This document shows, piece by piece, positions 4,749-22,186 of a DNA stretch of 64,000 nucleotides. Source of the stretch: Hyaloraphidium curvatum SAG 235-1 (taxonomy: Eukaryota; Fungi; Monoblepharomycota); NCBI GenBank assembly GCA_025558095.1, contig JAIVFI010000010.1, forward strand, positions 248,001 to 312,000, given 5' to 3'. A program made the position numbers and the translations under genes. The number at the start of each line of letters is the position of its first letter. The first letter of the stretch is position 1. The notes beneath the pieces were generated by a model. It saw nothing but the letters and a program-made list of their open reading frames with translations, was not told the origin of the DNA and did not search any database.

Positions 4749-5891
4749 ATGTCGCAGGCCGCGAAGGACTCCATCGTGAGCTTACCTTGTCCAAACGACA
4801 TTTTCACTCGGTATGCTGACCACGCATGCCTGTCTCCCGGGCGCGATGCAACCCGCGGGATGCTCCCTCGCCGGCCGGAATCCACCCACATTCCTGCATC
4901 AAATCCTGAAGGTTTCCGACATCTATGAGGACATTCTGCAGGACCTGGCTATGGACCCGGTGTTCACCGTACACAGGATCCAGAAGCTAGCGAAGTCGAT
5001 ATGCCAACTCTGTGGCCAGAAGTGGGTGTGAAGGACCGCCGAAGCGGAGGACTCCTGACCCTTAGCATCGCCCCTCAATTGCTCCAAAACGTTGGTTGCA
5101 GGTGTCGACATTATGGTGAGCCGCCTTGAGGCCCTTGGGACGTGTTGAAACCGCTCACACCGGGACTCGCCATAGCACTCGGCCACGGTCGGGACATTTA
5201 CGGCAACGACGCGTCGCAGCTGGCCGGCGAAAAGTACGATTGCCCGTCTTGTCGGAGGCCATATCCGCCGGCCAAATTTGCGATGCACTTGGAGAAATGC
5301 CTCGGACTAGGCCGGACCGGGATGCGGGCGGCGGCGCGGTCTGCAAACGCTGCCATTTCCAACGACGGACGCTCGGTCTCCGAAGCGGAGACTGAATCGG
5401 ACTCTGACTCCAAGAAGAAGAAGAAGAGCGGCTCGAAGAAGAGCGGGAGCAGGCCCAGTTCCGTCCAGCCGCCAAAGAAGAACGGCAAAGCAGTTTACGG
5501 GCCTCTGGACACGTACCTCACGCCGATGCAGCCTGCTCCGCCTGCGGGAAAACCCATCATCAAGATCAAACTGTCGAATCGACCCGCCAACCCCTCGCCG
5601 CTGCAGCAGTCGTCGTCTTCGGTTCCTTCCGAAGCAATGACGCCATCGTCAAACAACGACATGAGCGAAGATTGGGACATGGGGAACGCGGAGACAGAGG
5701 AAGACGACCTCGGGGACGAGGACACGGATGATGGCTCGGCTTTTGCCTCCTTCTCGCAGCAGAACAGGCGGAACAGCTTCGCCGGCAAGACGGTGCCCGG
5801 CCAACGGCAGGATGCCGTCGACTCCTGGGTTTCGCTGGGCGATGACGACATGGAGAGCAACCAGTTCTCGTTTTTCCCGAGTGTGACGTGA
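4749..5891 (+). CDS. SGF11: SAGA deubiquitination module subunit Sgf11/ATXN7L3
   Basis: IYEDILQDL helix, DIYG, and zinc finger CPSCRRPYPPAKFAMHLEKCLGLGR followed by a low-complexity tail; the start is approximate. Confidence 0.8.
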
Positions 5892-5992
5892 TGATCTATT
5901 AGCGAAAAAAGCTGCAGTCGATTGAGGTATCATTTCCAGTTGGATGCGATCCGAAACCCAGTTCTTGCCGCGGGCCATACCGACCCGACGCT

Positions 5993-8900
5993 CTAGCCCA
6001 TCGTCTTCTGCCCGTCCCAGTCCTCGTTCTCAATCCACAAGCACCGCGACCGCAAGGCCGCAGCTCCGCCGCCGAGCAATCTGAAACCGTTCCTGCTCCC
6101 ATCCAGAGTTTCCTCGCTGGCCCCGCTGGGCTGCCGTCTCCTCTTTGCCGGCAGCTCCAGAGAACCAATGTCCAACCCTGCTTCCGCGAGTCCTCCAAAC
6201 TCGCGGGCGTTGCGCTCCCGAACCTTGCGCCACCCATGCTCAAAGCGCTCCCAACACAGGAGCATGCATCTCTCGACGTCCCTCACCCAGCGCGCCGTGT
6301 CGAAGAGAGGAATCTTGTCTCGCGTCAGAAATAGCTGCCGCCGCAGCCGAACAAGAGGTCCCGACGGCGTGTAGATGTGCGTAGGCGCCGCACGGTCCGG
6401 GAAGAAGCGATCGACACCGCCACCATCGACTTGCGGCACGGTCGGGCAGCCACGGATGTCCTTCCACCGCCACTGCACACCGGCCGCGAACCGAACCGCG
6501 CGCTCCTCGTACTCCTTGTAGCTGGTGCAAACCATCAGGTGGCCTAGCAAGTTGGGGTTCTGCAGGGTTTCCACTCTGCTGCCTTGTCCGTTGCGGAGCT
6601 CGCGAGCGGCGGGGGACCGCGTCCACCAGTCCAGATCGCCGGTCCCCGTGACCGCCTTGGCCTTGCTGCGCGCGATCTTCTGCGCCAGCTCGGCAACGTC
6701 CGACGTCGTGGCGTCCTTGTCGATGCTGCACAGTTCCGAGAGCATCACCGGGCTGTCGGCCGCGTCCCACGACCCAGTTGCGTAGGCGACGCTGGCCGCA
6801 ACCCGGCTGCACATCTTGAACTCGTACTTGGGGAAAGTCACAAGCGGCGTGCCGCTCCAGAGGATGTCGGCCGCCGTCGTGTGCGCGTTGCACTCCGGCG
6901 TGTCAAGGAAAATGTCGGCCACGCGGCCCCGTTGGATGTGCAGATGCTTCGGTGCGACGTCTGCGTTGTCGGGTATCGGAAGGTAAGAATCATGCTCCGG
7001 CAGCGCCCCGCGTTCAATGCTCACCGGTGAACAGGATCCTGTCCGCAACCGCCTCTCCGGCCCGTCCGACGGCCCAGCGCTTCAGGTGCTTCTCCGCGGC
7101 CGGCGGGAACCGCAGCAGCCACAAGACAGAGTTCGGCACGCGGCGCAGGATGTTGAGCCACGTCTCGAAGATGTGCGGGTCCACCTTGTACGACTGGTTC
7201 ATGTTGGCAAAGATGACCGTGTCCTCCCTGATGCCTGGGAACAGCTCCTGCCGCATCTTGAGCCGCAGGAACTGTTCCTTGGTCCACTGAACCCAGTCTC
7301 CGGGCGAGAGGTGGTCTTCCCCGTCGGCAAAATCGGACGCAGGCGGCCGCGCGGTCCCGGCGAGGCGGACCAGGTCGGGAACCAGCTTCTCGACCTCGTC
7401 GTCCTGCAGGTCCCGGAAACCCTGCCTGTGGTCGTTGACGAAGTAGCTGTGCGGGAGGTAGACCACGTTCTCCGTGTAGACGCGGTTCGTGTCCGTCGCG
7501 TTGCGCCTCTTGTGCGTCGGCGGCGGAGGCAGGAAGCCGCCCTGGAGCACCTGCTCGACCTCGATGTCCCTCGGCTCGCCCACGACCGTCCTGCGCGGCA
7601 GCGCGATCTCATCCGCGACGAAGTAGTCGATCCAGCGCTCGCGCATGGTGTCGAAGAAAGCCAGGTCCGGGTCCGGATCGACCGCCGCCGCGTCGCCCGG
7701 GCTGGGCTGGACCCCCGCCGGGGCCACCTCGTCGAGCACCGGCCCCGCGCCCATCGTCCCGGCGAACCCCATGAACTGCATCGACAGCGGCGCCGGCCTG
7801 GCCGCGAAGATCTCGTTGCGCCCGCCCTTGGTGTACCCGTTGAGGTTGACCAGGATGTGGATCCCGTCGCGGGCGATCTCGGCGACGATGTCCTGCACCG
7901 ACATGCTGCTGGCGTCCACGAAGCGCTCGCACTCCCCGGCCACCTTGCGGCTGTAGGTCGAGTCGTCCGGCTTGGACAGGGCGTAGCAGACCACCATGAA
8001 GCGGCTCCGGTCGTGCATGCCAAAGACCGACTGCATCAGGTGGGACAGCGGGTGGTCCTTGATGTCGGACGAGACGTAGCCGATCCGGAGCCGCGGGTCG
8101 GGCATCGGGGGCGGCGGGCGCGGGAACGGGAAGTGCACGGCCGTCGACGCAAGCCGCCGCAGCGCCTCCGTGAAGCTGTTCCACGACTCGGAGCCCCGCG
8201 AAACCGACGGCAACGCCGCCAGGGCGGACGAGGCGACGTCCGCGGGCCGCTGCGGGAACCCGGGGAACCACGCCGACGAGGTCACGTTCCAGAGGATCCT
8301 CTCGGCATTGCACCGGCTGATCTCGCGGACCTGGTACGCCGTGAGCGACGCGTACGTGAAGGTGTGGAAGGGCAGCACGGTCGGGATGCTGACAGGGTTC
8401 TGGCGACGCGCGGCACGGAGCTGCTCGTTGACCACGTGCGAGATGCGCACCAGGTTCTCGTCCCGGTCCGTCCAGTCGCACACGAAGAGGAGCGAGTTGA
8501 CGTAGTTGCAGAAGGCCTCGACAAAGTCGGGCTTGCAGGCCAGCGCGCGCCGGTACAGTCCGATGGCGTCGTCGACCCTGCCCTGGTCCTTGTACACGTT
8601 GGCCAGGTTGGCGAGGGCGATGTAGAAGTCGGGCTGGATGGCGATCGCGCGGCGGTAGCACGCGATGCCCTCCTGCACCATGCCGCGGTCCTTGAGCGCC
8701 GATCCCAGGTTGGTGAGCACGTGCGGGTGGTTGGGGTCGAGCCGAAGGCCGACTTCGTACCACGCGATGGCCTCGTCCAGCCGCTGCGACGACAGGATGA
8801 TACCGAGGTTGTTGCACGAGTTGGCAACCGCTGGAAGGAACGGCGTGAGCCGACGCCAAAAGAGCGCCAAACAACGAGCCACCCACGGTGGAGTGAGAGG

Positions 8901-15189: not shown

Positions 15190-16484
15190 TCAGAACGGGC
15201 AGCCGCGCCATTCTTCGCCGTCCACGAGGCCATCCGCGATGGTGAGGCGCTTGGGCTCGATCTCCACTTGCATGTCGTTGGCACGGGCCAGTTCGAACTC
15301 GTGGATGTAGATGCGGAGCTGGCAGAGCAGCACGTAGCCGTCCTCAACGGTCCGTACGTCGAGGTAGTCGTTGGAGACGGTGAACGGGAAAGACGTCGGG
15401 GCGTTGGTCAGGAGCAGCGCGGACGGAGGCGGGTCCTCGTCGACGTAGTCGTCGTCGAACTCGGGCTGCAGCTGCACGGCGGCCTTGATACGCGCGGAGC
15501 GGATGCGACTGTCGTCGAGCACCACGGCGGCCATCGCGGATTGCCCCATCAGCCAGACCTGGAAGCGGAACTTGATTCCTCCGACAAAGACGGCCTTGGG
15601 CTCGAGGTCGATCCGGTTGGCGGCGGGCAGGTCCACTGCGGGCAGCTCGAGCTCGAAGGTGTTGCACAGGTACGACCGTTCGCCTTCTTTGGGGATTGAA
15701 AGGAACGAGATGGCGTATGCCAGGTGCTCCGCGGCGGCTGCGTCCATGTGCGCTTGGAGGTCGCGGCTTTTGCACTTCCAGTTCAGGTTAGACGACACCT
15801 AAGCCAAGATTTCCCACAGTACCCACTTTGTGCGAGCAGCCGGGAAAGGAACACGGAACTATCCTGTGCGGGCATTCGTTGCGGTGCTGGGCGAGGAGCT
15901 GCCGCGCGAAGAAGTTGTTGCAGCCTTCGATGTCGCACGCGAGCAAGGTCTCCGGGCAAACGTCGGCCTTGTGGTGCTGCAAACGGCACGTTATGATCTG
16001 CGGCGTGCAAAGCGGCATTGATCCGTACCTGCATGTTGTCGGGAGGTCTCACGACGGTGTCGCAGTCCTCGCACCGCGCCTTGGTGCACCTTGTCTGGTA
16101 GTGCTCGTCGAAATGGCCCACCGTCGCCTTCCTGCCGCTCTCGAGCGGGCAAGGAATGTTCGGCACTTTCATGTAGCGGCGATAGAGGAGCACCTTCGTC
16201 GCCAGGTCGAGAACCTGCTGAAGGTTGCAAGGCCTGCGGCAGACGGGGCACGCAGTCCCGCCGCGGCGGATAGCGCCCGTAATGCATTCGCGGCAGAAGA
16301 AGTGGCTGCAGGCCTCCAGAATGACGGGCTCCATGTGGGGGAGGACGAAGTCCATGCAGATGGAGCACTCGTGGTCCCGTCGGGCCTTCGCACCCGCGCT
16401 CTCGCGTCCGGCCGCCGCGGCAGGCGGTCCAGCGCTCAGCGCGGCGTTCGCCATCGCGGGAAGCGGCTGCGCAACGCTCGCCAT
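15190..16484 (-). CDS. TRAF-like protein A: RING + TRAF-type zinc fingers + divergent MATH-like C-terminal domain
   Basis: C3HC4 RING CSIC...CSHFFCREC...CPVC; fingers HHKADVCPETLLACDIEGC and HRNECPHRIVPCSFPGC; LQAHMDAAAAEHL; beta-rich tail with AVFVGGIKFRFQV; two introns. Confidence 0.75.
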
Positions 16485-16632
16485 TGCTGAGCAGCTCTGT
16501 TCGCGCGCTCGCTACAAAGACTCGCGCGCGAGAGGGCGGCGGGGATCACGGTCGAGGCGGCCTCTTTCCCACTCACCCCCGGAACCGCCCCTCAGCGCTC
16601 GAGGGCGGCGAGGCCGAGGCACGGAACGCGCG

Positions 16633-18278
16633 ATGCTGACGTCCGACGACGACCAGAGGGACGCGCGCTTCGAGAGGGCCGAACATGCGCAGTTCGAGTG
16701 CGCCGCGTGCCACCGCTTCTGCTTCCCGCACCTGGACCCGCGAATCGTCGATGTTGCCGACTGCTACCACCTGCTATGCGGCGTGTGCGTGGACCGCGCG
16801 CTGGCCGGCGAAGGACCCAGCCGCAGTTGCCCCGATTGCTCCGCGCGCTTCTCCGCCAGGGACGTGAAGCCGCTCGATCACGACATAGCAAACTGGAGGC
16901 TGCTGCTCGGCACCTTGCACGGCTGTCCGCTCGGGTGCGGCTACAAGGGCGACGTGCAGAACATCGAGGCTCACCTCCTCACTTGCCCGAAAACGCGGTG
17001 CGACCTGTGTGGAATCACCGTCGCGGTCCCGAGGACCGTGGAGGAGCACCAGCAGAATGCCTGCCCGAGGTTTCGCGTACAGTGCAAGCATGCAGGCTGT
17101 CTGGCATCGCTGCCACGCGAGACGGTCGAGACGCACGACATGTTCTGCGACTTCAAGGTCGTCGAGTGCAGGTCGCCCGGCTGCAAGCACAAGGTACCCT
17201 GGAGAGCTGGTGCGGTCTTTGCATGCTGACGCGTCCCTCAGTGTCCGAGGAAAGACTTGAAGGAGCACGAGAAATCGGCCGCGCTCGAGCACGTCAAGCT
17301 GGCCACGGGACTCTTGCACAAAGCCGAAAACGAGGTAGCTGTCGTCATTGCCCTACTGGGAGATCCGTTCACGTGAATTGCTTTTAGGTCTCGCGCATCA
17401 CGAGCCAGATGGCGCTGAAGACGGAAGACAACCTCCGGCTGACCCGTCAGAATGCGACTCTGGCTCCCATGCAGGCGGAGGTGAAGCGCCTCAGCGATCT
17501 CCTGAAGACGAGCGAGAACACGGTGGGATATCTCACTGAGAAAATGCAGAACGCGGAGCGCACACGGGTGGATTCGCAGCGGGTCGAGGCGGCGCTGCGG
17601 GCCTCGCTGTCGGCGAAAGACGCAGAGATCGCGCGGCTCTTGTCGTCCGTCAAGCTGCACGAATCGGATGCCAAGGTCAAGGATGCCGAGATCGCGAACC
17701 AGCAGGCTGAGCTGGACCGGATCAGCGACGAGCTGCAACGTCTGCGTCCTCCCTCGGTGCCCGCTGCAATACGTGCCGATTCCAGCTACTCTGCGATTGG
17801 GAGCGTCGAGTTCTCGGTTCCGCACGGTTTCGGCCCTCCAACTGGTTCGCAGACTGCTGATCCGAACTGGAGCCTCTGCTTCCCTTCCAAGCCTATCCTC
17901 GTTGGCCCCATCGAGCTCCTGGCTCATGCTCGCGTGACGCATGCCGGGTTGGGCGTGGGTTTCGGCTTGGCAGACGCTCGGGTGCATCACATCAAGGCAG
18001 TCATTGCCCAAAGCTTGCTCCACAGCCCATCTCAACACCGCGTTGCGTCAACTCAGGTGCTCCACCACAGCGGCTCTTGGATTCCCGACATTCTGCATCC
18101 CGCTACCTCTGGAAGCATCTTCGACCCGGGCTGCCCCATCATTTCCAGCAGCGCTGAGAACGCGGAGAAGCACATCGTTGTTTCGTTCCATATTTCGACG
18201 CTGCGGATCGTGCTCAAAGGCAGCGAAGGCGCCGACGCCCCTTCGCGGACCGCTCGGCTTCCGAGGATCGCGAACTGA
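16633..18278 (+). CDS. TRAF-like protein B: RING + zinc fingers + coiled coil + MATH-like domain
   Basis: CAAC...CYHLLCGVC...CPDC, CPLGC..HLLTCP, HQQNACPRFRVQCKHAGC, HDMFCDFKVVECRSPGC, LKEHEKSAALEHVKL, coiled coil, FPSKPILVGPI. Confidence 0.8.
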
Positions 18279-18656
18279 CTGCGGAGGAGCGCATCCGCCA
18301 CAAGACCGTCGCAGAGCTTTTGCGACGCGCATGATGTCATCTTTACCTCTCTCCTTCGCACCTCTTGCACGGCCTGATGCACGATCAGGAACCTGTCGAC
18401 ACCTAGCCGCAGTCCGGCACCACGACGAGCTCGCTGCGCACTCCGTCGCTGATTGCACACTCAGTCACCACGTTCGCGATGTTTCGACTTCGTCTATTCA
18501 CTTTATCTCGTTTCGGGCACTAGTTTAGGTCTGTAAATGCTGATCAATTCAATCCACCACCCCCTATGTTTGGCGGTTGGCTTTGCATGGGAGACGGGCG
18601 GGGGAAGCCACTCCAAAGCTGTCGTCTCTGCCCCATTTCCGCCGACCGAGCCCGCC

Positions 18657-20174
18657 ATGGGCAGGCGGCTCAACCTTTTTGTAGCCGCGCTCGCCGCAGC
18701 GGGCGTCGTCGGCTGGCTGCTCGAGCCGCTGGGGAGCGCAAACACCGGCCGCGGCGGGCAACCGTCCCCCGGCGGATCTCTCGCGCACCACAAGCTGGGG
18801 GCGCGCAACGGAGGGCAGCATGCAATTAACGGGGCCTCCGTGTCGTGGAGCCCCGGCTGGTCCGACTTCCCCGGGCCTCCCGGCGGTTCCCTCGAGGGCG
18901 GGGCTGCCTGGTATGGGGGCGAGCTGTGGGTGGCCGGTGGATATCCTTGCGCTCACGGCACGCCGTTCGAAACGGAGAACGTGTGGAAGTACTCGCCAGA
19001 GTCCCGCTCTTGGTCTCCAGGCCCCAAACTGCCGGGGTTCCACGCGCACCACGCATTCAGCACGCTCCAGGAGACCAAGCACGGCCTGGTATTCTTCGGC
19101 GGGGTGAGGCAGCACTTCGACAAGGACAAGGACGGCAACAGGCGCCTGATCAACGACACCGGTGGCCTGCTGGTCATTCCGCCCGGCGCAACGACGTGGG
19201 AGCAGAGGCCTCCCCCTGGCGGCGTTGACATTGGGGGCATGGCCCACTGCACGTCCATGCGCCACGGACCCAATCGCCTGCAGTACTGCCTGTTTGGCTG
19301 CGGCGGCGACTACCTCAACGACACATTCCGGTTTTACTCTTTCGACCCAAACGCGCTGACATTTGACGCGCTGCCGGTGCCGCCAATGCCGACGACCCAC
19401 GCCCCGCTGCTCCTAGATGCCCCTCGCGAGCGCGTGATCATCATTTCAGGCCGGCCAGACAGGACCAAGGACCGCACTGCGCGCACCGAGGTGATGGCGT
19501 ACGAGATCCGGAACCGACGGTGGACGCCGCTCGGCAACATTCCGGACTGGGTCTACGTCTGCGAGGGTCGCGGCTACGTGCAGATTGACGACGGCTCGGC
19601 GGGGGGTAAGCCGACCGCGTTCCTCTTCGGCGGGCAGAACAACGCGGCCACAGAGTTCACGGTGCGCGACCTCTCGTACAGGGTTACTATCGAGGACGAC
19701 GGCTCGCTCAAGTGGGAACCCTGGACGAGGCTCCCCTTTGCCTCGTTCGGCCAGGCAGTCGTGGCCGCCCGGCCCCCCGTGGGCGGAAACGAGGACATGT
19801 CCGGGGGTATGCTGGTGCTGGGCGGCTCCGTCTCGGTCGGCGCGCACTGCACCTCTGCGTCTTTCGTGTACGACGGCTCCCCGGACCCGGCCGTGCAGGC
19901 TTCTGCTCCTCGGCTGCTGGCCCGCGCCGGCACGCCTCCGCGGGTGGTCGCTGCCTTCCTCGGGCCGCACCTGGTGACTGCCAAGCTGCAGAGCCTCCTC
20001 GAATCGGGAGTCGACAGGATCCACATGAACATCCTGCCAGATCTCGGGGTCCCCGAGATGAAGGGCGTGACGCTATCCAAATGGCCTTTGGTTGCCGTCA
20101 TCGACGTTGCGGGCGAGATCAGGACGGTGAGCTGCCCGGTCGACAGCGGATGCCGCTTCTACGGCTTCTTTTAG
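18657..20174 (+). CDS. Kelch-type beta-propeller protein with N-terminal signal/anchor, intronless
   Basis: Hydrophobic N-terminus LFVAALAAAGVVGWLL; kelch blades LWVAGGY...VWKY...W, LVFFGG, LFGGQ and LVLGGS. Confidence 0.75.
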   Translation: MGRRLNLFVAALAAAGVVGWLLEPLGSANTGRGGQPSPGGSLAHHKLGARNGGQHAINGASVSWSPGWSDFPGPPGGSLEGGAAWYGGELWVAGGYPCAHGTPFETENVWKYSPESRSWSPGPKLPGFHAHHAFSTLQETKHGLVFFGGVRQHFDKDKDGNRRLINDTGGLLVIPPGATTWEQRPPPGGVDIGGMAHCTSMRHGPNRLQYCLFGCGGDYLNDTFRFYSFDPNALTFDALPVPPMPTTHAPLLLDAPRERVIIISGRPDRTKDRTARTEVMAYEIRNRRWTPLGNIPDWVYVCEGRGYVQIDDGSAGGKPTAFLFGGQNNAATEFTVRDLSYRVTIEDDGSLKWEPWTRLPFASFGQAVVAARPPVGGNEDMSGGMLVLGGSVSVGAHCTSASFVYDGSPDPAVQASAPRLLARAGTPPRVVAAFLGPHLVTAKLQSLLESGVDRIHMNILPDLGVPEMKGVTLSKWPLVAVIDVAGEIRTVSCPVDSGCRFYGFF

Positions 20175-20366
20175 GAGGTGCATTTGTAAGAACAAAGGCT
20201 TTCCAAGCGTCTGTACAGCGCGAAGGGAAGTAGAGTGAAGGGTGGGCACCGGCGCACTGTTCGGGGTGTATTAATGGTGGCCAAGGTCCCGGCCCTCCAA
20301 GAGTTGTTCGCACGCACCTCACCGCGTTCGGCTCGAAGGCCGCTGGGTCGAAGCGGAAGACGCACG

Positions 20367-22186
20367 ATGCTGGCGTCCGAGGACGATCCGCAGCAGTTCT
20401 CGCAGACCTTCAGCCAGAAGGAGGAGCGCTTCGAGGACGACTCGCGAGCGCAATTCGAATGCGTCGCGTGCCACAGATTCTGCTTCCCGCATCTGGACCC
20501 GCGCATCATCGACGTCGAAAATTGCTCGCATGTGCTCTGCGGCGCGTGCTCGGACCGTGCTTTGGCCGGCGAGGGGCCCAGCCGCAGCTGCCCCGAGTGC
20601 TCCGCGCGCTTCTCCGCCAAGGATGTGAAGCCGCTCGGTCACGACCCCGCAAACCTGCGGCTACTGCTCGGCATTGAGCACGGCTGCCCACTCGAATGCG
20701 GCTTCGAGCGCGACGTGCAAAGCATCGAGGCCCACCTCCGTACTTGCCCGAACGCGCGGTGCGACTTCTGCGGAGTCACGGTTGCACTCCCGAAGACGGT
20801 GGTCGAGCACCAGCAGGACGAGTGCCCGAGAGCGCCGGTGCGGTGCAGGCACGCGGGATGTCCTATGTCCGTGCCTCGCGACAACTCGGAGACCCACGAG
20901 CAGTTCTGCGACTTCAAGGTCATCAAGTGCGCGTCTCCGGGGTGCAAGTTCGAGGTTTGCCCAGACGTTGGGCGCAGTGGAAGTGCACTGACCGTCGCAT
21001 CTCGCTGCAGTGCCGTCGCAAAGACATGGCCGGGCACAGGAACCTCGCCATGTTCACCCACCTCAAGCTCGCCACGGAACGCCTTGCCAAGGCCGAAAAC
21101 AAGCTGACCAAGGCCCTCAACGACCTCGCCCCTCTGCAGACCTCCCTATCGCACAAAGACGCCGAAATCTCGAGGCTCGCGGGCGAGCTGGCCGGCAAGA
21201 AGAACGACCTGCTGCTGCTCAATGCGTCGCTTGCTGAGAAGGTGGCCGAGAACGGCGCGCTGAAGGGGGCTCTCGAGGCTTGCGACGCAAAGGCCGCCCA
21301 GGACCGCGGAGCGCTCGCAGCCAAGGATGCCGAGGTCGCGCGCCTGCTCTCGGCCGTCAAGCTCCACGAGGCCAGCGCAACGGCCAAGGAAGGCGAAGTT
21401 GCACTGCTTCTTTCCGCTATCAAGCTCCAGGAGAACGGTGCCAGGGCGAAGGATGGCGAGATTGCGCGCCTTCGTTCCGCTGCGAAGGTCTACGAGGACG
21501 GCGCGAAGGCCAAGGACGCCGAGATCGCGCGCCTCCGTTCCGCTGCGAAGCTCCACGAGGACGGCGCAAAAGTGAAAGACGCGAAGATTGCCACCACGCA
21601 GGCCGAGCTGGATCGCATCCGCGCCGAGCTGGAGCAGCTTCGTACCGCGCAATCTCGCAGGTCGATCGTGTCCAACCAGCGTCACGTTCTGCGCGCATTG
21701 GTCGACATTCCGCTTCCCCGGGCGTTCCAACCTCCTGGGAAGAAACAGCGAAAGAACCCGAAGTGGGCTCTCTGGTTCCCCGCTGCGCCCGTCACGGTCG
21801 GCCCCATCGATCTCGTCGTGAACGCGTTGATCACCCACGACGGCCTCGAAGTTGGAGTTTCCCTGGCGGACAACCGCGTGCACCACCTTCGGGCGTACAT
21901 CTGGATGTCCGTGGACGGCCAGCGGTACCGGAACGTCGCCTCGTTCGAGTCGAAGCAGCTCCTGCACCACGGGGGTGACTTCCTGACCGACGTCCTCTAC
22001 CCGGTCGCGGAAGGGGAGATGTTCGACCGCAGGTGCCCCATCATCTTTGGCAGCGGCACGCCGGACAGGTACATCACCCTGAACGTCGACATCACCGTGT
22101 TCGACGTCGTGCTCAAGGGCAGCGAAGGTCCGACGCCTCCGACCAAGTCGTACAGGCTTTTCGACGACTACTACGACCACTACTAG
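20367..22186 (+). CDS. TRAF-like protein C (close paralogue of B) with expanded coiled-coil repeats
   Basis: RING start nearly identical to B (FECVACHRFCFPHLDPRIIDV), the same zinc fingers, an intron at about 20955-21010, coiled coil, and C-terminal WALWFPAAPVTVGPI...VLKGSEG shared with B. Confidence 0.8.
21320..21592 (+). repeat. Intragenic 63-nt (21-aa) tandem repeat, 4 full copies plus a partial copy
   Basis: Units start at 21320, 21383, 21446, 21509 and 21572, with consensus AKDAEIARLRSAAKLHEDGAK. Confidence 0.85.

Follow-up and report, generated by a model that had tools for sequence, protein, structure and literature searches.

The window analysed here is a stretch of 64,000 nucleotides from the genome of Hyaloraphidium curvatum (contig C10:248001-312000; genome analysed, 31.9 Mb in 55 contigs), and it contains three neighbouring genes, here called A, B and C, each of which encodes a RING, a run of TRAF-type zinc fingers and a C-terminal domain predicted to adopt the MATH fold (Table 1). 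H. curvatum belongs to the Monoblepharomycota, in the chytrid clade of Fungi, and is an early-diverging fungus of zoosporic lineage and not a dikaryon. An earlier reading of this DNA from its letters alone (hereafter the sequence-only reading) had described the three genes as full-architecture TRAF-like E3 ubiquitin ligases of a locally expanding family, and had contrasted them with Dikarya, a comparison that is beside the point for a monoblepharid, chytrid-like fungus. Its account of the gene arrangement holds, with A and B lying head to head at the roughly 150 bp that it had given (148 bp between start codons).

Table 1. Features of the three TRAF-like genes. Positions are those of the window unless another locus is named; amino acid (aa) ranges refer to the spliced proteins.
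Feature	Position	Strand	Description	Evidence
Gene A	15190-16484	minus	396 aa; P0004, NCBI DFJ74DRAFT_28621	Open reading frame (ORF) map, RNA contig, NCBI identity
A, exons	16029-16484, 15827-15976, 15190-15774	minus	Two 52-nt introns	
A, C3HC4 RING	16239-16367	minus	aa 40-82	Pfam zf-RING_2 E 4.8e-9, zf-C3HC4; pattern match
A, predicted divergent MATH-fold domain	15193-15675	minus	aa ~236-396; tail DGEEWRGCPF-COOH	AlphaFold2 predicted local distance difference test (pLDDT) 83; structural search
A/B intergenic spacer, shared promoter region	16485-16632	.	148 bp between head-to-head start codons	
Gene B	16633-18278	plus	514 aa; P0003, KAI9026145.1	ORF map, RNA contig, NCBI identity
B, exons	16633-17193, 17242-17334, 17388-18278	plus	Introns of 48 and 53 nt	
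B, C3HC4 RING	16699-16839	plus	aa 23-69	Eight ligands; weak Pfam RING matches
B, four TRAF-type zinc fingers	16924-17292	plus	aa 98-204, across intron 1	PF02176, 32.5 bits
B, coiled coil	17278-17729	plus	aa 200-332, across intron 2	Heptad periodicity
B, linker and predicted divergent MATH-fold domain	17730-18275	plus	aa 333-514; no W...PF tail	Alignment with C and paralogues; profile E 1e-55
Gene C	20367-22186	plus	587 aa; P0001, DFJ74DRAFT_704652, NCBI "hypothetical protein"	RNA contig from 20313
C, exons	20367-20954, 21011-22186	plus	One 56-nt intron	
C, C3HC4 RING	20460-20600	plus	aa 32-78	Pattern match; zf-RING_5 E 0.004
C, four TRAF-type zinc fingers	20685-21061	plus	aa 107-213, across intron	PF02176, pattern match
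C, coiled coil	21047-21625	plus	aa 209-401	Heptad periodicity
C, four tandem 63-bp units	21320-21570	plus	21 aa (three heptads) each	Tandem Repeats Finder (TRF) period 63, 4.0 copies, 76% matches
C, linker and predicted divergent MATH-fold domain	21626-22183	plus	aa 402-587; no W...PF tail	AlphaFold2 pLDDT 81; structural searches
Conserved W-x3-PF tail, examples	15193-15222; L012:5019-5048; L003:5551-5580	minus (window example)		

The reading frames of all three genes are intact, and their spliced proteins are identical to the NCBI models of H. curvatum. The contigs of sequencing run X1 skip exactly the five modelled introns (52, 52, 48, 53 and 56 nt), each of which has GT..AG ends (CT..AC as read for the minus-strand gene); because these contigs skip five GT..AG segments, X1 is a transcript assembly, which shows that all three genes are transcribed and that their splicing follows the models. 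A single RNA contig crosses the divergent spacer and spans both A and B. Intact reading frames together with spliced RNA rule out decayed pseudogenes for these three genes. In A, B and C alike, the last zinc finger is interrupted by an intron at an identical position ("...C-x-H/F-K/E | C..."). Database and fold searches were made with the stored NCBI proteins (P0001, P0003, P0004), exons being otherwise searched singly, and joined exons served only for local alignments and for the ratio of non-synonymous to synonymous substitutions (dN/dS).

The RING and TRAF-type fingers that the sequence-only reading had placed in all three genes were recovered by ligand, profile and pattern evidence alike. 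In each protein the RING is N-terminal, and the fingers follow it in an arrangement like that of TRAF6. All eight C3HC4 zinc ligands are present in A, B and C (pattern scan), and the zf-TRAF model PF02176 scores above its cut-off of 27 bits in each gene (A 29.5, B 32.5, C 30.3), the value for C being that of the genome scan, with 26.1 bits for its single ORF. The pattern scan detected complete C-x(2-6)-C-x(10-13)-H-x(3-8)-[CH] fingers, four each in B and C and three in A, whose additional first finger is degenerate, with Ser replacing the second Cys. Among sequences in the PDB, the sole match covering both RING and fingers of A is the RING-zinc finger (RING-ZnF) fragment of TRAF6 (5vo0, aa 37-189, E 3e-5), and the finger region of B is best matched by the fingers of TRAF5, TRAF4 and TRAF6 (E 0.005-0.05), with SIAH1 weaker.

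Coiled coils were sought as a hydrophobic periodicity of 3.5 residues, compared with 2000 shuffles. Heptad power reached 1.91 in B (aa 200-332; 0.19 in shuffles) and 2.51 in C (aa 209-401; 0.17 in shuffles), and no shuffle of the 2000 was as high in either case, which bears out the coils claimed for these two genes. The same test detected no heptad periodicity in the short linker between fingers and MATH domain of A, where the coil is absent. Full TRAF architecture, claimed for all three genes, is therefore retained for B and C and withdrawn for A: B and C have the classical TRAF layout of RING, TRAF fingers, long coiled coil and MATH domain, and A has its fingers joined directly to the MATH domain, an arrangement like that of SIAH but with fingers of TRAF type. 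The rod of C is about 60 aa longer than that of B because of its four 63-bp repeat units.

The beta-rich C-termini with a MATH-like strand had been noted from the letters, and whether they fold as MATH had been set beforehand as a test of the reading; predicted structures do fold in this way. Modelled by AlphaFold2 on an alignment of seven C-terminal domains (A1: A, B, C and four further copies that the genome contains), the domain of C is an eight-stranded sandwich (pLDDT 81, predicted template modelling score 0.79), and at the top of its Foldseek matches stand only MATH domains of SPOP or USP7 (E 6e-5 to 1e-3, template modelling score by target 0.6-0.68). An exhaustive structural alignment (VIA), independent of Foldseek, against 48,161 chains placed only MATH-fold domains in its top nine matches, including USP7 (Z 10.3), TRAF6 (9.3), TRAF1 (8.9), SPOP (8.8), Siah1 (8.8), TRAF3 (8.2) and meprin (8.0), before a drop to Z 5.8 for the next match; because a Z of 8-10 is by itself little above background, the assignment leans on the agreement of these nine and on the gap below them. 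The domain of A, modelled on a 17-sequence alignment of the same subfamily (A2; pLDDT 83), returned the same nine families in VIA (Z 9.2-7.5), and an Atlas fold search led to plant MATH families.

A second line of evidence is a chain of profiles. The genome holds a second C-terminal subfamily (A3, with copies at C15, C16 and C10:214k), and A2 aligns to A3 by hhalign with 90.5% probability (E 1.3e-6, 133 columns). The A3 profile in turn has SPOP or USP7 MATH domains as all of its top 29 matches in the PDB (E 0.0017-0.02), and one A3 member (ORF L008:3850-4776) has sub-threshold Pfam matches to MATH_2 and MATH. The "xxVG[GP]I" strand lies within the beta-rich C-terminal domains of A, B and C. 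From predicted models and profile links together, we conclude that these are highly divergent MATH/TRAF-C domains. Nearly all copies in both subfamilies, and their homologues in Sequence Read Archive (SRA) assemblies (see below), end in a tail of the form [DE]-x-E-x-W-x3-PF-COOH, which B and C alone do not have, and this tail might bind the MATH groove of its own molecule or serve as a docking motif.

Across the genome, a profile scan located zf-TRAF at 20 or more places, which fall on about 17 loci. The count of paralogues, which the sequence-only reading had named as a check, comes to about 14 full TRAF-like copies, in small clusters on contigs C7, C10, C15, C16 and C17. The subfamily of the window (A1 profile) accounts for seven full copies in three clusters, plus fragments: the three genes described here, two tandem genes on C17 and two genes about 10 kb apart on C7. 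The A3 subfamily contributes at least seven further copies, again with fragments. A scan with PF22486 (MATH_2) located canonical MATH at just two places (C9 and C34), neither at a zf-TRAF locus, and scans with PF00917 and PF21355 gave no candidates, their controls being equally silent.

Two of the other clusters have features of their own. The second gene of the C17 tandem pair (L001 = C17:521000-530999; 5494-7267, minus strand) contains a partial internal duplication, in which one linker and early-MATH segment runs into a stop (ORF 6141-6572) ahead of a second, complete copy (ORF 5494-6129); NCBI annotates only a truncated form of 281 aa (P0016), and the gene may be a broken copy or include a mis-modelled intron. 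On C16 (21000-31000, L008), the second subfamily has at least two full TRAF-like genes within about 7 kb, together with a fragment at C16:22057-22269.

Searched by HMMER against 1.84 billion representative proteins, the A1 profile gave only 17 matches, namely seven from H. curvatum, five from unannotated SRA assemblies, four metagenome fragments and one marginal insect protein. Three of the five SRA matches come from SRR26194948 and two from SRR23967301 (loci L016, L017 and L020; L018 and L019 in SRR23967301), and these loci carry RING or zf-TRAF exons upstream and share intron positions with the H. curvatum family. As an ABCF3 gene on the 80-kb SRR26194948 contig L016 is closest (52%) to that of a monoblepharid, Gonapodya prolifera, the organisms behind both runs are probably undescribed monoblepharid-like fungi. 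Judged by these profile matches, orthologues of the A1 subfamily are not common single-copy fungal genes, so that this second condition, named beforehand in the sequence-only reading as one that would refute it, does not refute it for this subfamily. Word-based protein searches with the C-terminal region of C and with the whole of A returned the query alone, the method being ill-suited to such divergence. Some Dikarya do carry proteins labelled "TRAF-type zinc finger protein" (e.g., Paracoccidioides PAAG_03923).

These distributions bear on a reading of the genes, and of A above all, as housekeeping E3 ligases of SIAH/SINA or ZFTRAF1/CYHR1 type, with RING, zinc fingers and a dimeric MATH-fold substrate-binding domain, rather than as TRAF relatives. 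The layout of A (RING, zinc fingers, MATH fold, no long coil) is that of SIAH1, and the substrate-binding domain of Siah1 ranks level with TRAF domains in the structural search (Z 8.0-8.8). ZFTRAF1/CYHR1 (PF28124, CYHR1_TRAF_C) likewise combines a RING, zf-TRAF and a TRAF-C-like end in about 350-400 aa, and ZFTRAF1 clusters score 0.90-0.91 to A by language-model features. Sina_ZnF (PF21361) does give weak matches, but at 13.7-18.4 bits against a cut-off of 32, while zf-TRAF reaches its own; no Sina_TRAF match was found in A, B or C by Pfam scan. The three to four TRAF-type fingers, rather than the two of Sina proteins, also argue for TRAF relatives, as do the TRAF5, TRAF4 and TRAF6 fingers that outrank SIAH1, and neither SIAH nor CYHR1 is among the 17 matches of the C-terminal profile. 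Moreover, the tail and domain of A are shared with paralogues that possess coiled coils. We therefore regard a SIAH- or CYHR1-type identity as very unlikely.

How the three genes relate to each other is best seen in a tree of C-terminal domains, where B and C are sisters (100/99), as are the C7 pair and one SRA pair, the A3 subfamily falls cleanly apart and A stands on its own deep branch. On this tree B and C are recent sisters and A is an old separate branch, and a single recent triplication that produced all three is ruled out by the position of A. The proposal of a locally expanding family thus stands in so far as the genes are duplicated in clusters, but A is old and this cluster is one of several. 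The sequence-only reading had also taken C for a paralogue of B, with conserved N-termini and diverging C-termini, and both points agree with the alignments: identity between B and C is 70% over RING and fingers (dN 0.19, dS 0.65, dN/dS 0.29), 47% over the coiled coil (dN/dS 0.48) and 37% over the MATH domain (dN 0.64, dS ~2 and saturated, dN/dS about 0.3). At the DNA level, identity is about 0.8 across exon 1 (16663-17193 vs. 20400-20954) and about 0.5 right past the first intron, with synonymous divergence differing as well (pS 0.44 vs. 0.70), a step that may reflect gene conversion of the RING and finger exon or stronger constraint. Overall, as read from these comparisons, the family grows by local duplication, with the RING and finger exon of B and C kept, coil length shifted by 63-bp repeats and the MATH domain diverged, and this pattern fits diversified target specificity on a conserved catalytic platform.

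Such a pattern could be read as non-self surveillance or innate immunity, in which positive selection would diversify the MATH domains for recognition of molecules of pathogens or other foreign origin, an idea put forward for the TRAFs of animals and of Dictyostelium. The C-terminal domains do diverge far faster than the N-termini, the genes lie in small clusters with lineage-specific duplications, and decayed or fragmentary copies occur elsewhere in the genome; TRAF-like proteins of Dictyostelium have been proposed, although not demonstrated, to act in cell-autonomous defence (PMC5758549). However, the domain-wise dN/dS comparison, another check named in the sequence-only reading, lends positive selection no support: with ratios below 1 in all three domains and dS saturated in the MATH domain, dN/dS cannot decide the matter. 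Ordinary subfunctionalisation also predicts faster divergence of a peptide-binding domain, and scans of the genome for TIR_2 and Death domains, made exon by exon and hence a weak negative, detected none. A role in non-self recognition thus seems unlikely on this comparative evidence.

Taken together, the data make it likely that the three transcribed genes are functional and belong to a family of TRAF-like RING E3 ubiquitin ligases with about 14 members in H. curvatum. By analogy with the named families, the RING and first finger would recruit the ubiquitin-loaded E2, the coiled coil would oligomerise B and C, and the MATH domain would bind short linear motifs of partners or substrates, so that each paralogue would ubiquitinate different targets. 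Protein-language-model neighbours (animal TRAFs, Dictyostelium DG17 and ZFTRAF1) point the same way as leads only.

Several observations weigh against this interpretation. None of the seven A1 C-terminal domains has a Pfam match at E up to 10, the Pfam MATH models PF00917, PF22486 and PF21355 do not reach their curated thresholds in A, B or C, and the VIA scores of 8-10 barely exceed what unrelated models can reach; the MATH assignment is accordingly one of predicted structures and a transitive profile link. Animal-type upstream partners appear to be absent from the genome, given the lack of detected TIR_2 and Death domains (the weak negative described above). Finally, the position that follows the first RING cysteine pair holds Ala in B and C (CAAC, CVAC) and Ile in A (CSIC), an Ile that contacts the E2 in TRAF6-Ubc13 structures, so that the ligase activity of B and C might be weak or missing.

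This last point, together with Pfam RING scores that are strong for A (5e-9) and poor for B and C (E 0.004-0.02), would suit a model in which B and C serve as scaffolds without catalysis, comparable to TRAF1 or TRAF3 in some settings, with a RING that no longer engages an E2, and oligomerise their partners through coil and MATH domain. Against it, B and C keep all eight zinc ligands, and the RING and finger exon is the part best conserved between them (at the dN/dS of 0.29 given above), which indicates a maintained function, although not necessarily catalysis. We hold a scaffold role to be quite unlikely, and favour TRAF-like ligases for B and C as well as for A.

In animals, TRAFs serve innate immunity as central adaptors and E3 ligases, and the likeness of A, B and C to TRAF2, TRAF3, TRAF5 and TRAF6 extends through the order of domains in B and C (RING, several TRAF fingers, coiled coil, C-terminal MATH fold), the sequence alignment of the TRAF6 RING-ZnF to A, and the TRAF-C domains of TRAF6, TRAF1 and TRAF3 among the best structural matches. 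Unlike animal TRAFs, the three proteins have MATH domains that Pfam MATH, MATH_2 and TRAF-mep_MATH do not recognise, A has no coiled coil, most H. curvatum paralogues (though not B and C) end in W-x3-PF-COOH, and TNFR, TIR or Death partners were not detected in the genome (again a weak negative). The TRAF-like proteins of Dictyostelium discoideum (DG17, DdTRAFa-p) represent another non-animal expansion of RING, zf-TRAF and MATH proteins, with more than 40 genes predicted and 16 of full architecture (PMC5758549). By features, A has the DG17 cluster among its closest neighbours, but Dictyostelium belongs to the Amoebozoa rather than the Fungi, and its members have a MATH_2 domain that Pfam detects, whereas A, B and C do not. 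TRIM37, of the subfamily A TRIMs (RING, B-box, coiled coil, MATH), is an ancient eukaryotic ligase that has been reported from a few fungi (PMC3503706) and shares the RING, coiled coil and MATH layout; no B-box family is among the Pfam matches of A, B or C, TRAF zinc fingers sit at that position instead, and a TRIM37-like identity is ruled out by this missing B-box.

In a 2012 survey, all TRAFs then known came from animals (PMC3503706). Outside animals the full TRAF architecture has been discussed mainly for Dictyostelium, whose expansion is the closest precedent there, and our search of the literature brought up no relevant paper on TRAF-like genes in fungi that are chytrid-like or early-diverging. 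With the transcribed, roughly 14-gene family of a monoblepharid, the complete layout is now known from Fungi as well, which suggests an origin before animals, fungi and amoebozoans diverged and a later loss in the well-studied Dikarya. One may go further and speculate, as a long shot, that the family descends from an ancestral RING, zf-TRAF, coiled coil and MATH ligase shared with animal and Dictyostelium TRAFs and lost in Dikarya, and that it would act in a fungal cell-autonomous response to danger or non-self, its MATH domains diversifying against changing targets and the W-x3-PF tail (lost in B and C) gating the MATH groove as an intramolecular pseudo-ligand. Neither Pfam nor a sequence search of the PDB picks up the MATH domains of A, B and C (the seven-member A1 alignment found nothing in either), which were recovered by structure prediction and profile chaining only; counts of comparable families in early-diverging fungi may for this reason be too low.

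Between B and C lies an intronless gene for a beta-propeller of kelch/galactose-oxidase type (window 18537-20174, plus strand; Kelch_6 E 1.3e-9) with a hydrophobic N-terminal segment. It has its own transcript (RNA contig 18611-20198), separate from the RNA contig of gene C. Because this contig begins at 18611, the true start of the kelch gene is probably an internal Met near 18657 rather than 18537.

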